A DNA stretch of 64,000 nucleotides from Trichosphaerium sp. ATCC 40318 (Eukaryota; Protista; Tubulinea), in contig JALMLS010000343.1 of NCBI GenBank assembly GCA_038496445.1, positions 62,001 to 126,000 of the forward strand, given 5' to 3'. The stretch's first letter is position 1, and every line of letters begins with the position of its first letter. The notes under the pieces are model-generated. The model had not been told where the DNA came from. It did not search any database and saw nothing but the letters and a program-made list of their open reading frames with translations. This document shows, in pieces, positions 28,956 to 60,745 of the stretch. The position numbers and the translations under genes were made by a program.

Positions 28956-29088
28956 TACCCTTATAGGGTGCAATTTTCTGCGTGTACTTTAATAAACTTG
29001 AAAATTTTAGCTTAAACCAAGGCTACTTAAACGAGTTCCTAAGGAACTTACATATTGAAAATACAACTCGCGAGTGACGTTCGAACTT

Positions 29089-32000
29089 ATGGCCAACGCG
29101 GCTAACTTCACGAGTACTTCTATGCGTTATACTGTAATTTACTAATTCTCTCTAAGAGAGTATGTGGAATAAGCTCAAAGGAGTGATTCTAGGTTCAGGC
29201 ACCGATGATTTCAAGAAATTGGAAAGTTTGTTTTACGAAGAGAAAAAAGAAAAATCGTTTCTAGTGGATGAAAATGGCTTTAAGGTACGCAAATACAGAA
29301 ATTCGCGTTAACATACAAACAGGCCGCGCAAGATATCTTCGATTCGTTCGACAAGGCCAACAGTGCAAAAAACAGGCGCGATTACTTCGTAAAAGTAGTC
29401 AGTGAATGGACGGCGATGTTAGTATCGCTAACAACCGAAACTGGGTGGAAGCCGCTTATAACATGCGACTTTCCGTTCATATTTTGGCTTCTATTGCGTA
29501 TTCGACGGTACACTATTTGTTGATGCTTAAAATAACGTGTTGTTTAGGTACCAACGCTACCCTGGTATATCGATCGAAACTAGCAAAACTATGGACGTAT
29601 TTGCAGTGAAAGTTGTTGAAGGTTTTGTTACTGTATGTACATTTTTACAAAAGCTCGAAACGTTTCGCTTAACCTGTTGAAGGCGTGTGCTTCGATTTCT
29701 AGCGAAGGTCAAAAAATAAGGGGCGCGTGGTTTTTGCGCTGCCTGAATAGCAACAGTTCGTTATTTGTGGCTTTACACAAAGAAGTACTATTACACTTGC
29801 AACAAGATCCAAGAGATGGTCACAGTTATACTTTCCATAAGTAAGTATCCAAACGTAAATATGACTCATTATTATCTTAGTAAGGCAACTCCTACTGCGA
29901 TTGTTGTTTATTTTATTACACAAACCCTGGCTCACAATAAAACACTCAAATTTGAAAGCAAAATTAAGGAAGAAGACCGCCCTACATTTGATAAACCGAA
30001 AGTGAGTCCATGGAGGAGGTTCTTGGGGAGGTGTACAAGCAATGAAGAAGTACTAGAAGCTTTGGTGTTATGTGTGAGGATAAACCGCAAGCCATTGACC
30101 TCATACTTGAGTGATGTTCAATCTCAATATTTAAAAAAGGTACTTATTGTATTGTTTAATCCTAGTACTTATGGAAGAAGGCAACAGTGAAGCCAGCTCA
30201 TCTTCTTATGATTGTGTCCAATTATCCTAGGGGAGTACCTCTTCATTCGAAAACAAATATTATAAGTGTTATAAGAGGTACGGAACAAAGTCACAGTTTT
30301 GAACTTACCTAGCTTAGCTGTCCAACTTCAGTCTGCTTTCGAAGTCAGCCCTTGGCTTGATGGTCTTGAGCGCTTGGCGCTACTCATATTTAAAGGCAAA
30401 AAACGTGACAAGGAGGTACTAACCTTTAGTCCGTATTCTACATTCCAGTTGTTGACGTTATTCTTTGTTTAGATGTCTGCTGAGTTATTTAATGCGTTTG
30501 TTGAAAGTTTTACAAAGCGTGCCATATCGTTGTGCACGCAATCACGCTACTCCACGAGTAAAGTAGTTCTAGACTTTGATATGGTTATTTCATTAATGAT
30601 GTCAAAGTTGGAGGCATCACAGTTCAAAGGTAGCCTTCAAACTCTAATCGAATGCATACAACCACAATGGAATAAGTTAAGTTCATCAGGACTCAACCTT
30701 AGGAGGTACACCAACTTCAAAAGAAAGTACTGAACACCTCTATAGTATTGTACCTCATCTGTCAGTGAACGAGCAATTGAATTTCTTCTCACAAAACGTG
30801 GAACACCAAGAACTGACAGATAAGACAAAAGAGTTGTTCCTTGATCTATTTATGCCAATAAAGTCAGACACATTAATAGGAGAGCGTCTTGCCCCTGTTA
30901 AGACTTTTCTTGAAAGTGGTACAATTAAAATCATTGAGTATATTTTTAACTGTTGCTAGCGAAAATCACTACCCACAACCGAACAGTTAGTATCGCTAAA
31001 CTACTCGCATTTTTTCTAAAGATCGGTGATTATTCTTCAAAGTTTTCGGCTAGAGATGAAGATGAAGTGAATAGTACATTGAAGCAATACCTATGTACTG
31101 TAAGTAAAAGTGTTGTATAACAACCACCTAACCTTGATCAGAAAATATCTCCAAATCATAGGTGGCGGCAAAGTTTTCTGACATTGCCAGACGGGCTGTT
31201 TATTGACTTTCTCAACAAACAGGAAAAAAAATACTGTGCTGGCCCGTTCCCTTTACTTTACCGTAGTGCATGTGATATAGTAGTACAAGAGATATTTAGA
31301 GCTATAAAAGCTGATAACGTTATAAGTAATGGTATGTCATTTCTTTGACTTTGGGTTCCTTTTTTAACTGTTCTAGACTCATTTGTTACGCTAAAGTGGG
31401 TGAAAAGACAACTATCCACGCGAGGAAACATGCAATTCTCGTATTTCAAACTCATTGCGTGTTGTTATGCTTTAGCAGATGCAGTTAAAAGCTCAAACGC
31501 AATCTACAATCCTCCACAAGAGCTTGATGTGCTTGTTAGTATGGCAGCCTTATGTGATAAAGATACAAATCGTCACAAGGCGTACATGTATCATATAAAT
31601 TTATTCAACAAAGGGTTAGACAACTACAAAGTACAGATCCATGAATACATGAACAAGTTGGAAGACGGAGATGTTACAATGGTACATTCATTTTGACAAA
31701 GAAAATATTGTAACATGTCCTAGGCTGAACTAACAGACGTTATTAATAACAAACAAAACTTTATAAATTTATGTAAATCACTTAAGGTTGGATATATTGG
31801 CGTAACTAAGAGTGAAGACCTAAAGAAAGACTACGAGGAGACAATTAATGAGCGGCAGAAATCTATTCTTGTAGGAAAGTATCTTGTTGAGCTCCGAATT
31901 AATCAAGCAACTGGGTTGATATACTCGTGTAGAGGACTACATTCATCGGCAACCTACAACGACATCAAAAGTTCTTTATTCGAACTTCGTAAGAGGTTAC

Positions 32001-35000
32001 AGTGTATTCCTACTCAAGTGATAGGTACATACATTCACGTGTTATAGATAGACATCTAACTGTTTTCCAGACTCGCTCTATTTTTTCCTTGATAGAAAAT
32101 CTGCGCTTTTTACTTCTTGTATTCACGACAGTACCCAATATCAAAAACTTATGAGCGGAGAACTTGGTGTACGATTGCAGAAATAGGCATTTTTTTCTAA
32201 GTTGATTGTAGTCGCTATCAAATGAAGACATAGTAAAAATTGTAAATGAAGCTGTAGAGAAAATGAGGCTGTTGCTTGAAGACGAACGTCAGACATTGAG
32301 CACACTGAATAGGTATTAAAAAAAGTAAGATTGCTCTAACCTGATTCAGTTTCTCCCAACTAATTGCAAAGCAATCACGAAAGGGACTAGAGGCGGAATT
32401 AAAGAATTTATCATTGTTCTTTCATGATAAGCTTGCAAACGTTTCAGAGCAAGCTATAGAACAAAAAATGAAAAGATTTCGTGCAGCCTTGGAACTCGTT
32501 AGGTACAAAATTCTACCTTCTGAAAGCATCAGTGCTAACTTAAAGATTTCAGTTATGGTAACCAGTTGAATGAGCTTGTAGAAGCTGTTGAGCAATATGG
32601 GTTCCCTTTCCAAGAATTGAATGCCATTGCGACACAAAGAGATGCAATTGTGCAAAAATCAGCAGCTATAACGTTCGGTCAGGTTCCTACAATTGTCGCT
32701 GATATAAAGAAGATGCTATGCAACTTAAAGGTAACTTACCTGTATTGAGAAATGTGCTCAATCCTTTACTATAGCCTTATCATATGCAATACTTTAAAGC
32801 TGTAAGACCAGCTGCAGACCTAGTAATGTTCTTGAGAAAACAAAAAGATTTCGGAAACACTATTCAAGTACGAAACTATCAAGCTTTTGTAAGAATAACT
32901 ATTGTTAGTTTCTACAAGATCAACTTCAAGGTCAAGACTTTCCTGCCAAAGTGTTGAGCGATTTACATTTAGCTCATGTATTCTTGGATCCGTTCTTGCG
33001 CCCTGGACAGTTTACTATGGAAATGTTAGCCAAACATGTTATTAAGCATTTCGCTACTGAAGATAAACTTGATAAACTTGAAGTTATCACGTGCGTTTAT
33101 AAATATTACCTAAACACCTTCTTGACTTTTTTATAGTGCATCCATGCAGAATCTGAATCAATCTATGATTTGGTTTAATACGGGTGTGTGCTTAGCCTTG
33201 TTCGTTGCTGTACTTACAAGCGTTAGTTCTCAAAGGTTTATCTTCATCGGCGTCCATTGTGCCTCGTATCAATAAACTATTGGAATCAGGATGGTAAGAG
33301 TATTTTTACAAAGGCTTTTTTTATAATTTTAGTTTAGGTTTCAAAGTCGACTTCAAAGGCATCGTAAAGGCTCAATGTTTTCTGCTTGCTACAAAGAGGC
33401 GGATAGAATTGTGACACTTCGTCATGATGACTTGGATGATCTTGTTCGCGGGGCGATTTTCTGTAGAACTGATTCCAAGATATTGCCCGAGCAAAAGGAT
33501 AGTATGCAGCTATTTGTTGACGTTTTCCATCTTGCTAAAGAAGTTCACGAGTGTCGCCTTCAACTTGAAGAAAAAGGTAACTTTTGCAATCTTATATTAG
33601 TGCTCTGACATATCAACTAGCGAACCCGAACTACCAGGGATCTGATGATCGTGTGTCCAACGAATTGACGCTAACGGTTCTAAAGGAAACGCTTACCAAA
33701 ATCAGAGTATAATCCGCGTATTATTTAGAACTAGTTGCTAACTCTTTTTTAGCATGAGCTTCAAACATGGGAGGAAAGCCAAAAGCTTAGCTTGAGCAAT
33801 GTCCCTAGAATAGTTAGGTTGAACCCTTACCAACTATTATCTTTAATGAAACGTATACACTCATTACAAACAAACGATATGAGCGAGGGTGACTTCGATT
33901 ATGCCTCTAAACATGATATATTTGCCTATGTAGCTGCTTGCTTTCCTGATGTACCACAGCAAGCCATAGAAATTGTGCCTGCTATTAAGCAAGCGTTGGA
34001 GGTACTTGTAGTCAATACCTCAATTACTGTTGATATGCTGTTCAGGTAAAAGAACCGCTTGATGCTGTTGCAAAATTATTGTTGTCAGTTCAAACAATGA
34101 CTCATATTGGTACACCAATGAGAAGCGATGGTTCACTTCAATACAGCCTCGTGAAAGCTGAGAGTTCAGCAAATATTGATATGTTGGCATTAATGTTTTC
34201 GCTCATGGTACTTACTTACAGTAAACAGAAGTATTTATGTAATTTTTAGAATGCTACAGCACTTCCTCATCATAGCGAAATACTATGGTGTAGCGATCAG
34301 ATAACTCCAAGGGCGCTACATCTCTTTTTACAAAGTACAATTGAATTTGCGAACACAGGAAGTACTTTCTTCATTGTTGGTGTTGATAAGCTATCGCCTA
34401 TTATCAAAGAGGTACATCACTCCTTTGCTCATGTAATGATTACAGACACTCATAATTGACCACAGGAACTATTACAATTCGTGTCAGATATACTTCAAGA
34501 CAAAGTGCATCCCATGACAGCACAGACATACTTGATTTACACTGAGAGAACCCCAACAGAGATTGGATTTCTTCCAACAGAGGAGATACAACCTTTTGCT
34601 ACGATCAAGCTAGGGTCAGCCATTAAATCGCTTGGCGCGTGGACGGCTGATAGGAATATTGGTATATTTGATTTTATTACTGGAAATCCAAGAGATGGTA
34701 AGAGCACCTACATTCAAGATAGGATGAAGGAGCTTCAAAAAGCTGGACACAAAACTTTTACAATAAGGCACGTGCTTATAAAAAGAGCATAAATTGTATC
34801 GCATCTCACATTATTTCTTAGCATCAACGAAGACTTTTCAGTCAGGTCATTTTTAACAACTCTAAACCAACAACCTTCGGATAAAGGTGTTTTTGGCATT
34901 CACTTTAATGTATCTTGCTATGCACCTTTTGATGTCTTGTTTCGTTTCTTCTATAATTGGCTGATATGTGGCACTTTCTTGGACGAAACTAGCGGCGATA

Positions 35001-38000
35001 TAGAAGTACCAAGGTACAGCACAAAAGGTAGGAATACAAGAGTTGTTGACATACTCTGTTTTAGTTCAAACCTCAAGTGGCATATCTATGTTGAAGTCCC
35101 AAATCATCATGACCATCCTGATGACATTGGACATGTCCTTGAACGTCTTCCTATTGTTAAACTATTAGGTAGGAACAGACACGTGAGTGATTCCGCATTT
35201 ATAAGCAAATTTCCATTTAAGCTATCAAAAAACGTCGGATTGGTAGCCAAGTTCCTTCAACTGGAAGCTTCAAATGTATGTGCTTTCCAATGTTTGTGTT
35301 ATTGACGTCTATCGCCTAGGCGCTTAATACAACAAACTTTTCTACTGTAGAGCGGCTTGAAGATCCACAGACAATACATAAGCTTTTAGCAACTCTTTGG
35401 CAATGTACGCTACTCCTGATTTGTTTGACATGTGCTGAAGCTTACTTACTGAATTCTAAGCTTGTCCTGATATCTTAAGAATTCGTGAGCATCAAAAAAT
35501 TGCTTTGGAGTTTCTGTGGGAGCGGTGTCAGTTCATGATTGAGTGCTATAATCACGATATCCAAATATGTCAGAAGAATCCTGATACGCTACCAAGACAT
35601 CATCAAGAGAGTGATCCTCAATATTATAGCAAGCTATTTAAGCTTTTTAAAGATGAAGTAAATCAACTTTGCAATAAGAACTTGAAGGACAATTGGGCAT
35701 CATTTAATCATGGTTATGCTTGTTATGGTAACGCTAACATAAGTGTTATGAAGCTTTCTCACGTGCGTAGCTACGAGCTTTATTTCTTTGCTAATGAAAG
35801 GCTAGTCTATGCCTGTTCGAAAATACCGTGATAGACATGGTATAGAATGTGATAATAGCTGTGATTTCAAGGTGAATATATTTTTGTTGTAAAACTCTAA
35901 AAAACCGTTAGCATGATGCCGAAACAGGCCTTTACGTGCTTGATGGACCAACATCACGTTTGGCACCTAATTTACTGAGATCTTCTTTGGCAGCTACCCT
36001 TGGACTTGAAGGAAGGCAATTGGTTCGTTTATCATAGCTGGTGCAAAACTCTTATTAAATCTAGACTGCATTGCTTAAAGAACAAGGATACTATCTCACC
36101 CCTGATTTTGCTTTGAAGCTTTACATCCTTAACGAGCGTTCAAAGACTCATGCTGGTGTTCTTCTTGAAGGTAATAAGGGATTCTATGGATGGACGTTGG
36201 TTTACTTATATCTCTATAGGTGGTACTGGTGTTGGAAAGTCAGAGATGCTCCGATTTTATGCCACAGTTCTCAATTCCCGTAAGAAAGTGACACCAAACT
36301 TTAAATACGAGCTTGTGAGCCTTATCAAGTCATTTATTGACGGGTATAATCCTGACCCTGAGGAAGATATTGGCGTGGTATGCCACATTCTTATTTAAAC
36401 TTGGATGCTGATTTACATCTAGGACATGGCTGAGTTGAAGAGCATTGGAAGAAGACTTACTGTTTATGCAAAATTAGATGACTTAATAAGAGAGCTTACT
36501 ACTTATGGCAATGATAACCCAGCAATTGCAACACCTCTCTCGAATTACCTCATACAATCACTTCAAGTACTTGTATCTGAATATCCATTGATTCAGTGCG
36601 TGTAGCGCTCCAGTAGATCATTGAACTTACTCCTAATTACTAGACCTTCAGCGGAACCAATCATTAAGAGACAAGTTGCAGAAACAATGGAAGAAGTCAT
36701 TGTATTCATAAAAGATGTCATCAAACTGAAGCCAATCAAGTTTTTTGAGAAGATCCTCCTCCATGAGGGTATCACTGCAGCAGCGTTTAAGAAGCAAGTC
36801 AAGAGTATCATCTCACAAGTTAAGAAATACGCGGAAATCCTATCGGATATTAAGTTTGTTGTATTCGTTGATGAGCTTAACACTGCGCTGATTGGAGGTG
36901 TCGTTAAGGAGGTCTTCATTGATCACACTATTGACGGCGAGCCTATACCTCCTAACATATTCTGGGTCGGTGCTATCAATCCGTACATGGAAGATGGTAA
37001 GCATAGTTAATTCTTCTTGTATTATTTATTTAACACCTCTTCAGGATCGTACATCGTTTACCCAATATCGCCAAGTTATGATGAGATAAAACTATTGTGG
37101 ACACAATTGACCAAGGATCAAGAACGTGACTTCCTGGCGTCTGTACTTGCCGAATGGCGTTTCGAAGGCGTACGTTTTCTATGATCTATTCCTTGGGATT
37201 AACGTTTATCACAGACAGCGGCAAACCTTAAGAAGAAGTTAGAAAAATTTGTTTTAGAAGCGCAACAATTTGTTGGACGTTGCAAATTAGATCGTATGTG
37301 TGTCTCTATTCGAGACATTATGCGCGTTACAACATTATATCAGTTTTTCTTAAACGTAAGTTTACTCACCTTCTGAGAGAATCACGTTACCTAACACGTG
37401 TTTATTAGCGTAAATTTATAAACTACCAACTGCATGATGAACACAAGAGTTGGCGTGCTATAATGATGGCTGTAGCGATTGGGTATTACTTCCGCCTTCC
37501 AAGCCATCGTACGTTTTGAGTATTGTTATCATGCGCTCAAAATTGTTAGACCAAGTAGGTGAAGAGCAAGCAGACTTTGTAAACTACAGACAATTATTTG
37601 TTCATAACGTTGTGGACAAACTTAATGCACCTATCAACTTCGAAAGAGAAGTATCAACACAACTCAAGTACTTCTTTGATTTGATGAACAAAAACGGCGG
37701 TATTCCTAAAGGTATCGCTCCAACACGCGCTCTTTTGGAGAATATATACAGCACTGTTGTTTGTTTGGAAGCCAAACTACCATTGATTATTATTGGTCCA
37801 CCTGGATGTAGTAAGACACTATCTTTCAAGCTTGCTTGTGACAACATGAAAGGAAATGGTACTGTAGTCAACATGACATTTTCTTTGTCACTGACCGTCT
37901 GTACTAGCTTCTCAAGTAGAGTTCTTCCGTAATTTACATAACATCAACAGACACAACTACCAGGTACAGAGCTTTCAGAGTACTGCCTCATTCAAGAGTC

Positions 38001-41000
38001 TTACTGTTTTTTACAGGCAAACGAAAATTCTACTGCCAAGGAGATAGAATCCAAGTTTGTTATTGCTGAGAGGAAACAACAAAAGTTTGAGCAAGCTAAC
38101 ATGGACAAAGAAAGGTGTGTTGTATTCATTGATGAAGGTGGTCTACCAGAAGAAAAAGAAAATGCGATGAAAGTCATTCATTTCCATCTCGACCATCCCA
38201 AAGTACCTTGTGTCATCCTGTCAAACAAAATGCTCGATGCAGCAAAGTCCAACCGTGCTATTCAAGTACGCCTTTGGAGACACAACGAAAATACTTACTG
38301 GGTTACTTTTAGGTCCGCCAAGATTTCATAGGCGAACAGGATATGATCACTCTTGCTAAGGGTACGCACTCAGCACATCGATGGCACTAACGTTGACAAC
38401 AAGGATGTTTGGCTCTTGATTCAAGTGCAAGTATGAAAAATGACTCTGGAAGTATTGTAGGTCTTTGCAAGGCATTCAGTCAAGTCAACGATCATGTCGA
38501 TACACGTGCTCATCTCTTCCATCAACGTGATTTTGTATATTTTCTACGTTACTTGAGAAAACATGGTACACAAGACGCACACAAAAGTTATGTTACTTTC
38601 TCTCCTGAAATCGTGATAAAGGCTCTAAAGGTAAGAGTTCAAGACGTACTACCATATCTTTAACCCTTAATAGCGTAATTTTGGCGGTGTTTCAGCAGCT
38701 GCTTTTGAAAACATTTGTAGTTTGTTTATGACTGTAATCGCTGAAGAGACGAAACAAAGAAAATGGAGTCTTCCAAACGATTTTAAATATAATGTGATTG
38801 ATACCCTTAAAGAGAGCATAAAAGATACCCTATCACCTGGAGAAGATCCAAGTCAATCCGCAAGTAGATACATTATGATCATTGACCCAACTAATGTTCA
38901 GGTACTTAACAGTCTTTTGAGTTGAAAAAAAATTGCATGTGAAGATTCATCACATCGTAGGCCTCTATTTCGTACTTGATGTCAATGGGTTTACTTCACC
39001 ATGACAAGGAAAAACGTGAAAAAGGAGAAGGTCAGTTTACCTACATGTGTAATGTTTCTGATTTCAAGGGTACATAGCTATAGTCGAATAGTTTGGAAGC
39101 TGACATTTGCCAGGTGATGAAAATGATATTGCAAGAAGCTCGTTGATTTCTGAACTTAAGATGCATATGGAGACAGGTGACACTGTTGTATTGTTCAATA
39201 GTGGACCAATTCGTACCTCCTTCTACGATGTTGTCAACAAACATTTCTCAAAAGTTTTGGGTGGCACAGATCAGTATCAATACTATGCTAATGTAGCTGT
39301 TGGGTGAGTTTTTTTTCTTTGGTCGCTTTTATTCTTATTTCTTATCAGCTCGTATTCTCGTCCTTGTAAGGTCCACCCAAAGTTTAAAATGATCATCCAT
39401 CTACCAATTGACGAGATGAAAACCACTGCTCTTCCGTTCTTGAACAGGTTTGAAAAGTATCTGTTTAGCACAGGTATGATCACTTTAAAGGTTTTTCATT
39501 AATGCTGTTGCTTAGAGGAAGTCCTGAAACACGAGATTTCGCGCTTTGAATACTCATCACAGAAGCATGTAAGCTGGCAGCTTGACAACTTGCGTGCTGG
39601 AGTTAATGACTTTGTGGAACAAGTCAAACCAACCTCGTATGAAAAAACCTTTCAAAAGTATTTTTTCGTTTACCTCGGTAGGTTTTATGGCGTAGTCGCT
39701 GCAGTAAATAAAGATAACGATAAAGATAATTGTCTCAAGATCACATCTTGCGATACCATCGATTCTCTTCTTATTACAATCGCAAAGGAGAATAGGTAAG
39801 CAAGCTCACGTTGCCTTGTAAGTCTAACAAGTTCGAAACAACAGGGCTTTCAATGGAATTAATGCAATCCAACCTGCTTTTTTTGTTGAAGACAAACAAC
39901 ATAATACGCCCGTTGATTCTAGTATTGGTCATCTCGTGAGGCAAGCTAATTTCCGTCTACTTCAACTAGCCAGGCCTGAGGCTGTATATCTCGAACGAGG
40001 ATTCTTACCTAAGGCATACTTATTTGAATATCTAATACGCCAAGAACATTTCAGGTATATTCTCTTTACACAAAGGTTTATTAATCACTTCGTTTAGTGT
40101 GTTAAGATTCTTGCACGCCTTGTTTACAGCTGAGACTTATGCTGCCTGTACGAACAACTACATTATAATGTATGCAAGGCTAATACATTATTTAGCTAAC
40201 CAAGGGCAAAAGAGAAAGTGGGTTATCTTTACAAGAACCTCTCCAGAGATGTTTTGTTTACATACAAATTCGAGATTACAACAACTCATTGTTCGTCCAT
40301 TAGTAGAAGAAAACAAGGATAAGTCTATTGATGAGCATTTGCGAGTAATCAACGTATCTTCTATTCAATCTAGCGAAGATTGCAAGCAACATATTAAAGC
40401 ATTCTATGCTTCAAAGACACGTGTGCTACTAGCAGTTGCAGATATGAGCGTTGGACAAGTCAGCAGGAACCAATTGAGCCTTCTTCAACAACAAGTGGAT
40501 ATGTTCACAGCTTCTTTAGATCCTGAAGACAAACGCATTGTCATCATACTTGTTCACTTTCCTACCGAGCAAACTCAGGTATTTTAAACACTGCTTCTTG
40601 CTGTGAACTTGAACTAACACCATGATAGCTTATTCGTTCTTACTACGATGCTGTATTCCTTAAGGAATGGGATTTTACTTACATTGATTCTTTGGGTGTT
40701 ATTTCTACTACTGACACTTCATTGAGAGAAAATAATGAAGATATCGATATTGTGGAGAACGTCGATTTACGTGATTGGATCAAAGTAGCGTTTATGAGAA
40801 CAGATGATAACCTGAAGCCTGTTACAAATGGAGATAAACGTAAAAGCTCTCAAAAGCTTGGAAAACCTTTCAGCAAGCAACTAGATAAATCAATAAGTGT
40901 TTGCTTAAAACACATCACATACTCAGTACAAAGAGTACCTAAACTTGAGCATTCACTAAAGTTCTACAGAGCTCGAAGACCTGCTGATAAGACGGTACTA

Positions 41001-44000
41001 CACTCATGAGTGTAAATGATCATGCTAAGTGCTTTTCTTTTAGGCGGTAATCCAGCAAGTGTTTACAGAAAACAATTACCTCAAGGAAGCGATTGTTGAT
41101 GTTCTTGTTAATTTATGGGATAAAAGATACTTGGATAGTATTATACATAGTGCTTGCCAAGCTCTACAAACAGGAGAGTCTATCATGCCGCTCATGGACT
41201 TGATCAATATGTCGCTAGAGTTTATAATTAATAAGATTATTGGAACCTCAATATCTGGTAACCAAAACAGTTTTACTGTTAGACCTAACTAACAGAAAAT
41301 TAGAAATTACTCGCAATTTCGCTTTGGAGACTATTATGGCTATCCGCAGTGTTGAAAACGAATATCACCGCAAAGCTTTAGAGGAAGTTACTGTACTGGG
41401 TCTTTCAAACATTGACTGGAATTTACCTGTACGTTAACCTAAAGATCACAGTCTATTAACTATTTTACTTTAGAAGAACTTCCTTTCCTTGAATATTTTA
41501 CAACTGCCTCATGTATCTCACTCTCAAAAAGCTCCAGCTTCATTACCATTGTATCATGTGTTATCATCTAAATTAACAGACGCTCTTGATAAGGCAAGAC
41601 AATGCGTTGGTTTAAGCGGAGCACAAAACATAGCAACTACAGTACTTCAACAACTTAACCTTATGTTGAAGCTCGACAAACCGCTACAAGTGCGTACACA
41701 AGCTATCCTGAAAACAATAACACTTCAAAACTTACTTATATCTTACTAGAAATGGATTAACGCTATCATACAAGATCCTTTCCTTCTAAGAATGTTTAAA
41801 GAGGTACATTAGACTTAGCGCCAATCAAAAACCTAACAAGAATTAGGACTTTGTCAAACACACTCTTGGTCTACCAGATATTTCTCAAGAAGAACTAGAT
41901 GTGAGACTGTTTCGGTTTTCAAAACAACTACTAACTGTGTGTAGGTTTACGTAAAATGGCTTGGCGTCAATAGTCAAGAAGCCACAAATCCAATAACAGC
42001 TTGGTTCACATCTTTGAATGAAGATGCAACGGCTATTGGCTTCTTTCACGTTTGCTTAAAACCTCTTCTTCAGACAACAGGCACTTTAGATCTGAGAATT
42101 GATCAGGATATTACACCTCAAAACTTTGAATCTCTTGTCCATGAACACACCATTAGGTATACATCATTTATTCACAATTATAAGATTAACCATTATCAGA
42201 ACTTACTGGAAGCGTCTTCATGAACTTTATGATGCACCTGATGATGTTCTAACTAAATGGTTTGACGGATTCAGATTATTGAAGGTACGTAGCCATTGCT
42301 TGTTAGATTGTTTCGCTCACACTTTTACAGGCTCGATTACCAAGCCACTTTGAACGTAATACAATGTTACCAAGAGCTCTAAGACATCAATATGACGTAA
42401 TGTGTACATTATTTTCTTTCGTTATGAACTGCCATGTTAAACCACGTGACACTGTAACTTGGTTTTCAAAGCTTCAAGTTGAAGAAGAAGGAACAACAGC
42501 ATCACTCTTAACACTCCATATGGTACCTTCTGACAATCAATACTCAATGGTTAACCTTTCATAGAAACTTGTTGAGTTACTGCAACCACAAGTAGAAGAC
42601 AAGGAAGTGCTTCGTCAATGTCTTGAACACTTCTTCGAAGATTGGGCCATATCAACATTCATTCCTGCGAATACTAACTCAGCAATACTTCAAAAACCTC
42701 CAAGAGAAGACTTCAAGGAAGATCTTCGTCTTCTTTTTGAAATAATTGACGGACAATCCTTTGAGATCGTGAACGCGCACTTGCGTTTACCAATACAAGC
42801 ACGTGTTTTGAAGTCGCTTCTAAGAACAAAATGGAGAGATGATGTGTTGGATATACTTGGAGCCCAAATGGCTATGAGGGCTTCAGCTGATAGATACACA
42901 CCTCCAGAGCTTGTAGCTTGTCAAGGTGCGCATGATAATCACTTACCAAAAGTGCTTCAAGCTTTTTCTCACGTCTGCTCTAGAAGACGAAGAAGAACAT
43001 ACATCTCCTCTACAGTATCTATACTATGCCACATTATGTGAAGAGCTATCTCCTAAATCTATTGGGGCCATTGCCCAATACTTTGTAGATTGCACACCAG
43101 AAACTTTTGTGAAAAAGGCGTCAAGATGTATTCAAATAGTGAATAAGGAAGCATACAGACTAAGTGCAATAAAAGGTACGATTTGCACGTTTGAAAAGTA
43201 TTCTGCTAACAACCTTTTTACAGCTGCCGCAATCCAACTATCGTGCTCAAACAACTTCATAACGCTTGTTCAAAGTTGGACTCAATCCCAAGGAGGTGCT
43301 CAACCAGTTTGTGACACCTTGAAGAAGATATTTGAACAGCAAGACTACCAGGTACACATTATCTCCTTTTTTCAGCCTGCCCTCTTTGCTAAGTTTTTAC
43401 TAGTCTATATTCTTCTCGAGCTTTACTAATGATGGACAAGTCATCAAGTTACTTAAAGCGAAGGATACCATGGCGAGCTTAGGACTTGAGAATTGGGTAA
43501 TAGATGATAATGTTTCATCGCTCCCACTCCACAAATGGCCTTTCATGATTGATACTGAGCATTCTGACCATGCGTTTTACAAGACAATTGAAACTCATGT
43601 ATCAAGTAATGACCTTAAAGCATTCGAAGCGTGGATACAAGAAGAAGTAGGCAATCAACCTGCGTCGTGTCTAAAGATAAGAATGTTCTTGCTTGTAGCT
43701 ACCTATTACAATTACTTTGAACTCGGAAACTCCTGTGGATTCACTTCATCCGCTATACAGAACCAAACTGTCTCTCAACTCCTCAGGTTAACAGCAGATG
43801 AGAAGGTTGTTTTCGATTTCTTTTCTAAAGCTCCACCTGATGCTCCAGTTCATGATGACTTGCTATTCGAGTTTTCTATAACAGCCCTTCAAGATAATGA
43901 AAGAGATAACTCAATGCGTCATATTCTTTTCTTGCTGATTGCTGTTACTATCGGACTGGCTCCTAACAAGTCACACTTTTATCCTAGAACATTCGCACCA

Positions 44001-47000
44001 GGAGCTGTAAGTTATTTGCTTAAGTTAACATCTAAACAACTTGTGTAGGTTGGCAAACATAAAGGAAGAGCTCCTGGAAGCACCAGGCCTGGATCATATT
44101 CTGCTAATGATTGTGGGTACATACTCAACAACGGAAAGCTCCTTGGTTCGTTATAGTTAGCTTATTGTGTTCACTAACCTTGCACTTAAATAGGCAATAC
44201 AATGTTCAGCGGTTCTAGACTTTCAACTCTTGCCAACAACTCTCTCACATGGGGTTCATTTGCAATGTCACTACTAGTAAACTATGCCAAGTTTGCACCA
44301 CAAGTTACACCATATTGTTATCATGGAAAATACCACGACTTGCTACGTCAAGATAACGGCATAAACTTAGCTGATTACACTCAAGAACAACAACTAAAAC
44401 TCTACGTTATGACTCGGTACGACTACTTTTCTTTTGTTCCAATATACCGCCTAATACAAGCAATAGTGCTCGTGTGTTTTATACGTATGTGTGCTCTGAT
44501 GAGAACATCAAACAAGCTGGGATCGAACCATTATTCTTCATGACTTTATCATTATGGCAATTCTTTGTTGTAGTCAGTAACGTGCGTGGAAACAAATCTG
44601 AATACTCCAATTCAACTTATTGACACTTGTGTCAGGGAGATGCAGCTGCTCTAGACTACTTTGACAACCATCAACAAACACAAGCTTATGAAACAATGAT
44701 GAAAGTAAAAGTGTTCGACTTTGTACTATCTAAAGCAGGGTACAACATAGTATAAGTCCAAATGACAATTTAATGTTGATTTAGTGCCATAAAACAAAAG
44801 TACAAGCAAGCCTATTTGCAAAGCGAACGGCTTCAGCAAATAAACGAAAAATCTGAGATACTTCAACAGTTACCAATATTGTTCCCTTCATACGACTTAT
44901 TCGATAAAGTATGGCTTTTTAACAGCTCCCTATATTCGTATTTACAATTAACAACTGTGTTAGGCATTGGCAGACTCAACTGAAGACTTTTCTATACTTC
45001 GCACTTTTAAGAGCGAACGAGATAACTTGAGACTGCTTGTTCACTTGCCGTTCTTTGTTCATGCGTACAGGTAGGACATTTGTTTGGGTTAAGGCTGTTT
45101 TTCTTAACGTCTTTTTTTAACAAGGTGGATAAATGACACGTTTGCGTACAAGTTTACTGTAGAAGATGCACAACGTATTACGGTGCCTGAAGCTATTCAA
45201 AGGCTTCAAGTCAACACATCAAAGAAGAATGCACACTTTTTGCTGTGGCAAGACATCAAACAAAAATGGAAGTCAATCAAGGATGTGTACGACATTGCTC
45301 CACTATAACATTTTACCTTATGATCTCACGTGATTAAAAACCTTTCTAGATTACAGTATTTCAGAGTGTGCAATGACGCCATGGAGAATGGTGAAGGTGA
45401 TATTCCAGATATAACAGATGAAACTCTCTTTTCAAGTGAGTACTCAAAGTCCCATTTATTGAGAGTTCTGCTTGCTTATCCTTTCTACAGGTCTTGTATC
45501 AATTGGATCTGAAAGGACCAACACAGAGCTTTTATATATCATCGAAGAGCTTGGAAAGTTGCAGGCGAACGTAATTGGATCTGCTGCAGCTTTGACCGAA
45601 GAAGAAAATTCAGGCGACATTAACACACTAGGTGCTACGTTTAATCCATTCGGTCTGGCTTGTGATTCTCATTTCGAGGTACAATATTTTAACACAACAA
45701 TACTCATTCTATTAGGACTACTGTCTCGCATATTTACCATCACTTGTAAAGTCAGAGGTGCGCTGGCTCCTCTGCACAGGAGATATTGAAGGCGAATTTG
45801 AAGGTACCATATGACTCTACGGTATTGTGCATGCTTGCTAAGCAGTATTAGATCTTGTACGCAGTCATATCAATATTATTAGAGATGAGGAAGGATCACT
45901 ATCACTTAAAGTAGACCTTGGAAAGTACGTGTTTCTCAGCATGGATTATGTTCTTATAAACTTGTTTCAGGCTTCAACGTCAAGTTCTCGACAAGTACTT
46001 TTCCGGACGAGTATTCAAGTGGCTTGATGGAAGTCCTATATCTTTCAAGCGTGATTTCAAAACAGCTTCTCCAGGAATGGAAGCTACAACTTTACTAAAA
46101 GAAGATGACCTTCCACAAGAGTATAGTGAAAACATCATCTGACTTTTTCTTATTATTTTCTTAGTGATCGCTTCGCTCCAAAGAGACAGTTCCACCATCT
46201 CTTAAACCAACTCAATAAGCGTTATTGTGAAGAAGACACTTCCAATCAAGTAGTAGCTATATTGGCCGGTAAAAGTACAGAGCATAGGCTTATGACGCTA
46301 CTTCGTGAATTGACAAACGTTGCAAATTACTTGGTCGAAAAAGAAGATGAGCTATCAAAAGATGCTACTACACAAGACCAACCTATAAATTATCTCAAAC
46401 TAGACTATGTTTCCTCTGGAGAAAGATGGCTAGATCGTATATGGCGCCAAGTACATCTCAATCACTTACAAGTGTTCGGAAAAACAGTTCTTGAAAAACT
46501 GCTTTCAAAGGACTACCTCTTCAATAACTTGCATGAAAACTTGAGCCATCCTATTCCACAGCGTACTCTAGAAGTATTAGAAATAGAGTTTGCTCCTTTA
46601 AGAGACGACACAGCACCTGCAGTCGAGCAACAAGTAGCCCTTGAGAACATGCAAAAGATTGCTAATTTCTTCCTTCTTAAAGAAGAAGTTCAGGTATGAC
46701 TCTCGCTTTTTTTTGATGACAAACTTACTCTTTCCTTAAGCACCTTGCATCCAATTCATCATCTAAGACGCTGAGGAAGTTATTCGCTACTCAACTTGAA
46801 GGACTAGGCATTGATCAAGAACAACTTGACAAGTTCTTGCCACAAGAAATTCTTGCTAAACACTTCAGAAGTTATGTTTGTCTTGTACAGCAAACATGCG
46901 GGTTGATGTTATTTCACCTTCAATCATCAAAGAAAGCGTACGTTATTGACAATAACCACCCTATGCGCAGCTTTAAGTGGGGTTCTTCTAAGAGTGTTCT

Positions 47001-49363
47001 AGGAAGACTAATGTTTATGTTGAACTTGTACCAAACAGCTCAGATAATACCCCTCTTCCAGATGCCGAACCTCTTACCTTTGAACCCGTACAAGAAGAAC
47101 CTCAACCTCAATTTGTTATCCCATCTCTAAATGCAGCAGGTACTGTTTAAAAAAAGAAGAGTTAAAGCTGTTTCCGAAATATCTAACAAACTGCTAGCTC
47201 TTCCCGACCTTGCAAGCTTTAATATCAATATAAACGATTTCAACTTTCCAGAAAACATGCAATACCACGCATTCGACAACTTTGACGTAGATGAGCTTTT
47301 GAATGAAGGTATACAGTACTTACACTGCACACCAAACTAATAGTTTGGTGATAGGAGAAGCTGATGTTTCAGATGATGATGAAGACTTTGAGGACAACCA
47401 AGAAGATGACGATGAAGTTGAGGAAGACGACGATGATATCGCACAGGAAATGGAAGATATAGAGAAGGAAGATAAGCACTTGGAAGAAGATGAAGATGAA
47501 ATACAGGAAGACGATGATGATATCGCCAAAGAAATGGAAGCAATTGAAAACGAAGACAGACACCTTGTTGAAGACCCAACTGTTCAAGTGGATACAAGTG
47601 GTCGTACACCTGTACCAAAAGGTTCTTTCATTGCAGAAGATAGTATCAAGGGTATGTAGAGGTATTACAACGGTTTTTAACTAACTATAAAAGCAGAACC
47701 TTCGAAGAAACACGATACTGTAGATATAGATTTGACATTAGAAGTTGAAGATATTGTCTTTAGGAAAGACGTCAAGGACACTGACTCTGATGATGAAGTT
47801 GAAGATGGCATGATTATTATTAGCACAACGTATAAGGAAGAGGATTACAATATTGACCTTGCTACTGATGATACACTTGGCGATTTTTTGGAATGTCTAC
47901 AGGATGAGGTATGTTTTAAGAAACCACGTGTTTTTACCATTTTTTTAACTGCTTATGAATTAGATTGGAGATGATTTTCCTGTTTTGTATGAACTCTTTA
48001 ATAATGGGTCACTTATTTTTAGCAACAATGACATGCTAATCGAGCACCTATTCCCAAAACAGAAGAAAGTCAAGCTTGTTCTAAAGGGTAATAAAAAAAA
48101 CTACCATCAAAACGTGATGATACTTACTGACAAAAATCTTTCCAGAGAAAGATGAGTTTTATGATATAACAGTATCAATAAATGGAAAAGAACTTCAAAT
48201 AACCGTTGAAGATGGAGCAGAAGTAGAAGAGATTTTAGAGCTAATAAAAGACGAAGCAAAGGTAATCATCAAACAACATATTCTCCTCTCACTTTACATC
48301 TTTTGAAACAACCTCCTAACTGATTTCATTCCAGGATGTCCTTGGCATAGATGTAATGGAAGATTCTATTTTCAATGTAGTAGGACCAGACAACAAAGTA
48401 GAAGCTTTAAATGTACGACATCACCAAGCTCTACATGAACTTCTGTTTTTTAACATTCTGTTTTAGTCTCACCTGAAAGAGAGTATCGGCTCAGTACTTA
48501 TGGGAAGTAGATTGCTGACTATCAAGTCACCTAGTATTGGTTTGACAGTTAAATGCATAATCGATGGAAAGCCTGAAAAGATTCTTGTAGTCGAAGAGAA
48601 CCCATGCATCTATGATCTAAGAAACTCAATTGTGCGTACAAAAAATTCTTGAAGCAAGTTTTTTGCTTTCTTTTCCTTCGGTTTGGCATGTTCCAGCTGT
48701 CTTATGTTTGTCTTCTTTTATAGAGTAAGAAACTTGGTGTTAGTATCAACATAATATCACTTAAAACAGCTATTCAAAACTATGGAGAATTAACCCTTGC
48801 GTTATCTCTTGATAGTGCTCCGATTTCATTACCAGTTTTCAAAGGATTTACTTGTATAAGACTGAAAGATTCTACCAACACCATTGATCCAGAAAGACCA
48901 GCATTAAGGAACTTCGAAGATTGTACACGTACGTATTGGAATAGTAAAGTAGTGAAGAACAAAAAATCAACATTATGGGATCTGGCTGACTTGTTTTTTT
49001 TCTGCAGCTGTTAAATGTGTTATTGAAGACGAAAATGAGTTTTTGGTTCTTGTAAAACAGAACTCATTCTTGGAGTCAATCACTGAAGAGTTACTGCTGG
49101 TAAGTCAATCTATATTTTAGTATAGCATTTGGTAGGTTGTAATTAACAATGTATTAGAACACTGATGCTAAAGACGCAGCTGAACTTCATAAAAAGTATA
49201 AGTTTTACAAAGGCAAAGGTGAGTTTTTTTTTTAAGTACTTGAGTATTAATGATGTTCAAAAAAGGTTCTGGAACGCGTATATCTAGTCCAAAATTAATG
49301 AAGAAAATCCAATTATCAAAACTAAATGCACCTATTCTACGTTTGATGCGAAAAACAAGGTAG
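29089..49363 (+). CDS. Giant RNF213/mysterin-like dynein-type AAA+ ATPase with C-terminal acidic repeat and tandem ubiquitin-like domains
   Basis: Motifs colinear with RNF213: GNPRDGKST; YYLTPDFALK..LLEGGTGVGKS; VVFVDELNT..KEVFIDH..VGAINPY; ALLENIY..KLPLIIIGPPGCSKT; VVFIDEGGL; SNKMLDAAKSNRA; QRDFVYF; METGDTVVLFN..SFYDVVN..CKVHPKFKMI..PFLNRFEKY. Confidence 0.9.
47402..47570 (+). repeat. Two-copy 84-nt (28 aa) acidic coding tandem repeat
   Basis: EDDDEVEEDDDDIAQEMEDIEKEDKHLE / EDEDEIQEDDDDIAKEMEAIENEDRHLV. Confidence 0.85.
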
Positions 49364-49971
49364 ACTATTTGTAACATAAACGTAATAATAAAAAACAACG
49401 CTTGTACAATCACGTGACAACTAGATGGCAAAATACTTATTAGAGCTCGTTCCGAAAAAGCATAAAAAAGTGACTACGACTCTAGCGGGTGGTGCTGTGC
49501 TAGGATAATCACTGTATGGAAACTGACATTGCAAGCAATATCAATTCACCATTAGTTTTCCAAATAGTGGGGTTAGAAGGAAGTGACACGTGGTCACTTG
49601 CCTGGGGTTTAACCCAAGCTGAAGTTTTACTACACATGATCAAAGCCATTAGGCCGAGAAACACATGAGAAGGAAACGTCAATACCCTTTTATCATCAGC
49701 ATTGTGTAGAATTAAAAAATTGTGGTTTGTGTGATCAAAGTGCCAAAGATTTGAAACGGCAAAATTCACTGAATTTTCTTGTCTTGATTTTTGAGCTCTG
49801 CTACGTCCAATCGTTATTTTCTTGCACAAATCAGTTTGTACTGGCACTCATTATGTTTGAATGCAATCACTTTTAGTGGAGATATGTACTTGTGGGTTGA
49901 ATTCGAGTATGCAATTTCAAGTATTAATTTTAGTTTGTACACTCTGTAACATGCATACTAAAAGTATTTAC

Positions 49972-59313: not shown

Positions 59314-60745
<1,432 letters not shown>

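Follow-up and report, generated by a model that had tools for sequence, protein, structure and literature searches.

A transcribed four-module C-terminal extension, possibly ubiquitin-like, in an RNF213-like gene of Trichosphaerium

We analysed a window of 64,000 nucleotides (nt) of contig JALMLS010000343.1 from Trichosphaerium sp. ATCC 40318, an amoeba whose genome has ~38% G+C and very short introns; all coordinates given here are positions in this window. Sequence comparison supports the presence on the + strand of a gene of ~20 kb that encodes an RNF213-like AAA ATPase. RNF213 (mysterin), a giant AAA+ E3 ligase, is a central but poorly understood factor of animal cell-autonomous immunity and the main moyamoya disease gene. 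The amoeba gene ends in an acidic tether followed by a tail of four compact modules, here called U1 to U4, whose ubiquitin-like nature is plausible but unproven.

The transcribed 3′ end of the gene

Over positions 47300–49450, the three reading frames of the + strand together contain an unambiguous chain of open segments that encodes the tail, with GT..AG introns of 45–92 nt. After the acidic exon, nine GT..AG-flanked exons on the + strand (47697–49363) yield an in-frame product of 383 amino acids that ends with a TAG stop codon (49361–49363). The exons and the polyadenylation-type signal are as follows.

47355–47651, + strand: acidic exon, 99 amino acids with 47 D/E, predicted disordered; the tether preceding the tail
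47697–47908, + strand: tail exon B, a 37-amino-acid acidic linker, then the first half of U1 (U1 start at 47807)
47964–48087, + strand: tail exon C, second half of U1 with the end ...KVKLVLK; a phase 1 intron follows at the U1/U2 boundary
48146–48261, + strand: tail exon D, start of U2 (U2 spans 48160–48535, over exons D, E and F)
48335–48412, + strand: tail exon E, middle of U2
48467–48631, + strand: tail exon F, end of U2 and start of U3 (U3 spans 48542–48873, over exons F and G)
48724–48928, + strand: tail exon G, remainder of U3 and an 18-amino-acid linker; a phase 1 intron follows at the U3/U4 boundary
49008–49099, + strand: tail exon H, start of U4, its first 18 residues resembling the start of U3
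49158–49218, + strand: tail exon I, middle of U4
49266–49363, + strand: tail exon J, basic end of U4 (...ILRLMRKTR), then the TAG stop codon
49387–49392, + strand: AATAAA polyadenylation-type signal; transcript contigs stop at 49409

To compare this model with expressed sequence, we aligned contigs of four public runs from three studies to 43800–49700. The runs are not on record as RNA, and the contigs were taken as transcripts because introns are absent from them. In these intron-less contigs, all nine joints of the tail appeared as GT..AG skips exactly at the predicted sites, across the four runs and three studies, and six further joints upstream of the tail were also present, back to 45924/45971. 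The body of the gene and its tail were bridged by single contigs with lengths of 2210, 2834 and 2079 nt, which started at 46423, upstream of 45971 and at 46513, respectively, and all ended at 49409. From 45971 onwards, one frame stays open over 856 codons until the stop codon is reached, and the AATAAA at 49387 lies 22 nt before the contig ends. Together, the bridging contigs, the open frame and the AATAAA signal identify the tail as the true C-terminus of the upstream gene; the C-terminal extension is real and transcribed. The 3′ untranslated region of this giant gene (49364–49409) is only ~46 nt long, with the AATAAA 24 nt past the stop codon.

These data bear on several claims of an earlier note, which had been made from the letters of this DNA. 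It had described units spliced in frame after an acidic repeat, and a single frame indeed leads from the acidic exon to the TAG; every peptide string that it quoted was found in the spliced tail product. It had also proposed that the exons join in one transcript and had considered a tail forming a separate gene as the case against its reading; the contigs link the tail to the upstream exons with all joints as predicted. Nothing was found in favour of a separate downstream gene, or of an assembly chimera misjoined to the RNF213-like gene; the AAA core (at ~37 kb) is linked to position 43800 by continuous + strand coding density and not by transcript contigs. Against such a misjoining, independent contigs from three studies span 45971 or 46423 to 49409 through every predicted joint, the single frame stays open throughout its 856 codons, and neither a start nor a promoter gap separates the acidic exon from exon B, the intron there being only 45 nt. 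This explanation is already largely refuted, and we regard it as very improbable.

Contigs from two other studies differed from the window at ~1–3% of positions (43800–49409), mostly synonymously; the same gene, with its tail, is therefore present and expressed in closely related strains or species. Within the tail, the strains differed by one conservative change (R to K) in a linker, three synonymous changes within U1 and a fourth synonymous change read at 48412. If about three quarters of random changes are expected to be non-synonymous, the binomial probability of one non-synonymous change in five is ~0.016 by a hand estimate, a small but real sign of constraint.

Four compact modules and their resemblance to ubiquitin

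The acidic exon has a net charge of −40 and a FoldIndex of −0.63. It contains an 84-bp (28-amino-acid) tandem repeat (47400–47556, + strand; 1.9 copies, 82% matches, score 223) that encodes EDDDDIA[QK]EME.IE.ED.HL.ED, and it is followed by the further 37-residue acidic linker of exon B, giving a tether of ~135 amino acids that is probably disordered. Beyond it, the four modules occupy tail residues 38–112 (U1), 118–200 (U2), 203–282 (U3) and 301–383 (U4); they measure 75–84 amino acids, against the ~75–95 given for four units in the earlier note. FoldIndex was positive for all four (+0.02 to +0.31, with U1 at +0.08 and U4 at +0.02) and negative for the linkers, which are short and polar between units. 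In the units, 35–43% of residues were hydrophobic, compared with 19–27% in the linkers and the acidic exon, and there was a clean alternation between these two types of segment. Net charge was about −10 for U1 and for U2 and +7 for U4.

None of the four units ends in Gly-Gly (their ends read ...VLKEKDE, ...LTIKSPS, ...IRLKDST and ...LMRKTR-stop), as the earlier note had said. The C-terminal Gly-Gly of a conjugatable modifier, whether exposed or before a cleavage site, is thus missing, and for this reason the units would not be conjugatable. Phase 1 introns fall exactly at two of the three unit boundaries, U1/U2 and U3/U4. The phase 1 introns at 47651/47697, 48087/48146 and 48928/49008 bracket three blocks, namely the linker with U1, U2 with U3, and U4, as would be expected had exon shuffling or duplication added the modules. 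The units are not significantly alike, except over 18 residues at the start of U3 and U4 (z 4.4; VKC[IV]I...), and tblastn of the units against the window returned no paralogous single-exon copy. U4, the weakest unit, could be a U3-like copy that has degenerated and carries a basic end.

Local alignment of the units to ubiquitin gave weak scores, with z reaching 2.7 at most; for U1, U2 and U3, the top alignment was in register with the first two strands and the helix of ubiquitin. We then scored a core pattern consisting of rigid blocks of the buried positions of ubiquitin (1UBQ), with free loop lengths and a maximum of 19. Shuffled units and 80-amino-acid windows of the gene body served as controls.

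Ubiquitin: score 17/19
U1: score 14.5/19, reached by 6/500 shuffles and 1.6% of body windows
U2: score 16/19, reached by 0/500 shuffles and 0% of body windows
U3: score 13/19, reached by 54/500 shuffles and 3% of body windows
U4: score 11/19, reached by 50/500 shuffles and 24% of body windows

An unbiased scan of the last 856 residues with the same pattern singled out U1 and U2. For profile comparisons, a 76-amino-acid ubiquitin query was used, validated by 100%-identity matches named ubiquitin. The search seeded with it gave a profile of 95 domains, which is narrow because it holds only near-identical ubiquitins (identity of 61% or more among the domains used). The hidden Markov model (HMM) of ubiquitin scored U2 at 5.9 bits (reached by 4/500 shuffles), U3 at 1.8 (22/500) and U1 at 0.7 (51/500), and gave nothing for U4. 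The four units, aligned with MAFFT without guidance, gave a profile that scored 18.7 (E 0.005) against the ubiquitin profile in hhalign and placed residues 2–51 of U1 on ubiquitin 1–50; this score was reached by none of 60 shuffled sets and, among 110 natural sets of windows drawn from the gene body, by one. As read from their sequences, U1 and U2 would each have the textbook order of strand, strand, amphipathic helix, strand, strand, short helix, strand, and U3 is plausible as a unit of the ubiquitin-like (UBL) type.

The ubiquitin pattern that the earlier note had ascribed to all four units therefore held in part: U1 and U2 fit the core and the profile match is in register, but the signal is only weakly above chance and comes with no family match. 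The beta-grasp fold claimed there is no more than suggested, by the fit to the hydrophobic pattern and one weak in-register profile match, and no family-level match was found.

Several observations weigh against a ubiquitin-like array. The core-pattern test was of our own construction and the unit boundaries were picked by eye. Pfam recognized no family in the nine tail exon pieces or in whole U1, even at E up to 10, and a PDB sequence search with exons B and C returned no UBL and only chance-level matches; a significant profile match to a curated UBL family was thus absent from both. HH-suite gave the match between the four-unit and ubiquitin profiles a probability of only 6.9%, U3 and U4 failed to beat their shuffles in the core-pattern test, and U4 had no ubiquitin signal in either local alignment or the ubiquitin HMM. 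AlphaFold, run on the single sequence of U1, produced a long helix and no beta-grasp, in a model too unreliable to count either way (predicted local distance difference test score (pLDDT) 53.6, predicted template modelling score (pTM) 0.35). Exon G found no true homolog among 1.84 billion representative proteins in a HMMER search and no usable match in the ESM Atlas; the HMMER search missed even the protein of exon G itself, so no stored protein holds the spliced tail. Metagenome scans for the exon F/G junction and for relatives of the 175-amino-acid exon at 46166–46690 found nothing. As no homolog is present in the libraries searched, evidence of conservation is limited to near-identical strains. 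Two bacterial low-complexity repeat proteins that exon G matched in the HMMER search were judged spurious.

Much of this would also be expected if the four units were real folded modules of another kind, either orphan, lineage-specific small alpha/beta domains or some other fold with a hairpin followed by a helix, serving as spacers or binding modules. The lack of any match in Pfam, the PDB, the Atlas or the representative library, the restriction of the core-pattern fit to U1 and U2, the low HH-suite probability and the U1 model, for what its low confidence allows, all agree with such a fold. It accounts less well for the register that U1 to U3 share with ubiquitin, for a four-unit profile that beats 60/60 shuffled and 109/110 natural control sets, and for sizes of 75–84 amino acids, which are typical of UBL domains; we consider it rather unlikely, although a serious candidate. 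A tail that is mostly flexible or marginally structured, extending the acidic linker and resembling ubiquitin by chance, would fit the barely positive FoldIndex of U4 and U1, the weakness of every similarity statistic and the low AlphaFold confidence. The hydrophobic content of the units and its clean alternation with the linkers speak against it, as do the mostly synonymous strain differences, and the core-pattern and profile controls argue against chance; this explanation appears improbable. On balance, we lean towards reading the tail as an array of three or four beta-grasp domains of the UBL type.

The RNF213-like body and the neighbourhood

Two exon regions of the body matched RNF213 in PDB sequence searches and are collinear with the human RNF213 chain.

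36606–37007, + strand: RNF213-type AAA module; its PDB matches with E<0.02 are RNF213 chains only (best 1.6e-3), corresponding to human residues ~2407–2490
37441–37929, + strand: P-loop AAA module, the most RNF213-like; its PDB matches are RNF213 (E 7.5e-11), midasin (2e-4) and dynein (~0.01), corresponding to human residues ~2674–2755

Pfam gave weak AAA_7 and AAA matches on 37441–37929, and the clusters closest to this region in the ESM Atlas were dynein-type AAA. The gene thus has a dynein-like AAA core that is most similar to RNF213, as judged by the two E values and their collinearity.

The earlier note had called the protein an RNF213-like giant ATPase and had described animal RNF213 as an ATP-regulated E3. 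The likeness was borne out for the AAA core. The premise of a ligase is doubtful, given the lack of any RING, RZ or CxxC match and of similarity between animal RNF213 and the exons of the C-terminal body. In detail, neither a RING regular expression nor a loose CxxC...[CH]xx[CH] pattern was found in the + strand open segments of 29000–47300, where motifs split by introns would be missed. The same segments contained no RZ-like pattern of the form C-x(2-5)-H-x(4-9)-C-x-C, and a PDB sequence search yielded no alignment with the RZ region of animal RNF213; the RZ finger is the C/H zinc site needed for lipid A ubiquitylation. A PDB sequence search of the C-terminal body exons at 40036–40584, 42565–43038, 43404–44045 and 46166–46690 gave no match, animal RNF213 included. 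On this evidence, the amoeba protein might not belong to the zinc-finger E3s at all.

A quick dynamic-programming gene finder, which recovered 6 of 15 RNA-proven exons and was used for rough lengths and never for exon borders, gave a crude gene model in which the acidic exon lies ~2300 residues beyond the AAA match. Human RNF213 has roughly 2450 residues after the corresponding AAA site. Since the two counts are close, the acidic exon and the tail look added beyond the canonical end. In published structures, animal RNF213 ends with its C-terminal domain, and it is not known to have an acidic tether or UBL-like array.

Further along the + strand, open segments at 59382–60742 translate to an actin-like sequence broken by short introns, as read from the list of open segments only.

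Possible roles and comparison with known systems

We propose that the gene carries a lineage-specific C-terminal extension, in which the acidic tether would present four compact modules, and that most or all of these would be non-conjugatable ubiquitin-like beta-grasp domains that have diverged beyond family-level detection. By analogy with UBLs built into other proteins, modules on a flexible tether could act as protein-binding handles; the UBL of parkin auto-inhibits and that of Rad23-type proteins docks on the proteasome. The modules could dock back on the ATPase or the putative E3 core and regulate it, or they could bring in partners that bind ubiquitin, for example the proteasome, autophagy receptors or p97 adaptors, wherever the machine assembles. 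Regulation in cis and recruitment of such partners seem to us the most likely roles. The mimicry of polyubiquitin and the decoy function suggested by the earlier note are possible, and its immune role is speculation borrowed from animals, with no support within the window.

The resemblance to animal RNF213 lies in a giant single polypeptide with dynein-like AAA modules, for which RNF213 is the best and nearly the only PDB match and with which they are collinear; the amoeba gene differs in having no detected RING, RZ or CxxC pattern and no detectable similarity in the C-terminal body exons. The arrangement of the tail recalls USP7 (HAUSP), a ubiquitin-system enzyme whose five C-terminal UBLs fold back and activate the catalytic domain. 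Its HUBL array likewise consists of tandem, non-conjugatable, UBL-sized C-terminal modules that are barely similar to ubiquitin or to each other and ends in a short C-terminal peptide. USP7 nonetheless belongs to another enzyme class with no demonstrated sequence relationship, and the amoeba units, of unproven fold, follow a long acidic tether. Midasin (Rea1), in which a C-terminal MIDAS domain on a long D/E-rich linker docks on the AAA ring, is similar in being a giant dynein-like AAA protein with a C-terminal domain on an acidic linker, and it is the second-best PDB match of the P-loop AAA exon. Its MIDAS domain binds the UBL domains of substrates, whereas the terminal modules of the amoeba protein would themselves be UBL-like.

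The nearest precedent for the polyubiquitin-mimic idea is OASL, an innate-immunity protein with two C-terminal non-conjugated UBLs that is a proposed polyubiquitin mimic for RIG-I. The UBLs of OASL are recognizable ubiquitin-family domains, unlike the amoeba units, and an immune role of the amoeba gene is hypothetical. Polyubiquitin, ISG15 and FAT10 share the head-to-tail order of ubiquitin-sized units; theirs are closely alike, end in Gly-Gly and are cleaved or conjugated, whereas the amoeba units are dissimilar, lack Gly-Gly and lie within a giant enzyme.

A bolder possibility, which we consider a long shot, is an RNF213 relative in which both ligase fingers, RING and RZ, have been lost and whose gene instead encodes a built-in poly-UBL tag, borne on the flexible acidic tether. 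Upon assembly on its target, for example a pathogen, an organelle or a lipid droplet, the ATPase would cover that target with ubiquitin-like surfaces without any ubiquitylation chemistry and would directly recruit ubiquitin-binding autophagy or proteasome adaptors.

The deep evolutionary history of RNF213 is barely described in the literature that we searched. A transcribed amoebozoan relative in which ubiquitin-sized modules form an extra C-terminal array, and from which the zinc fingers are apparently missing, would help to tell the ancestral parts of the machine from later ones. It would also provide a natural experiment on the ways in which the output of such a coat-forming ATPase can be wired. 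If the modules are not UBLs, the tail would be an ordinary lineage-specific extension of a giant protein; if they are, it would represent a new architecture within the known RNF213 family.
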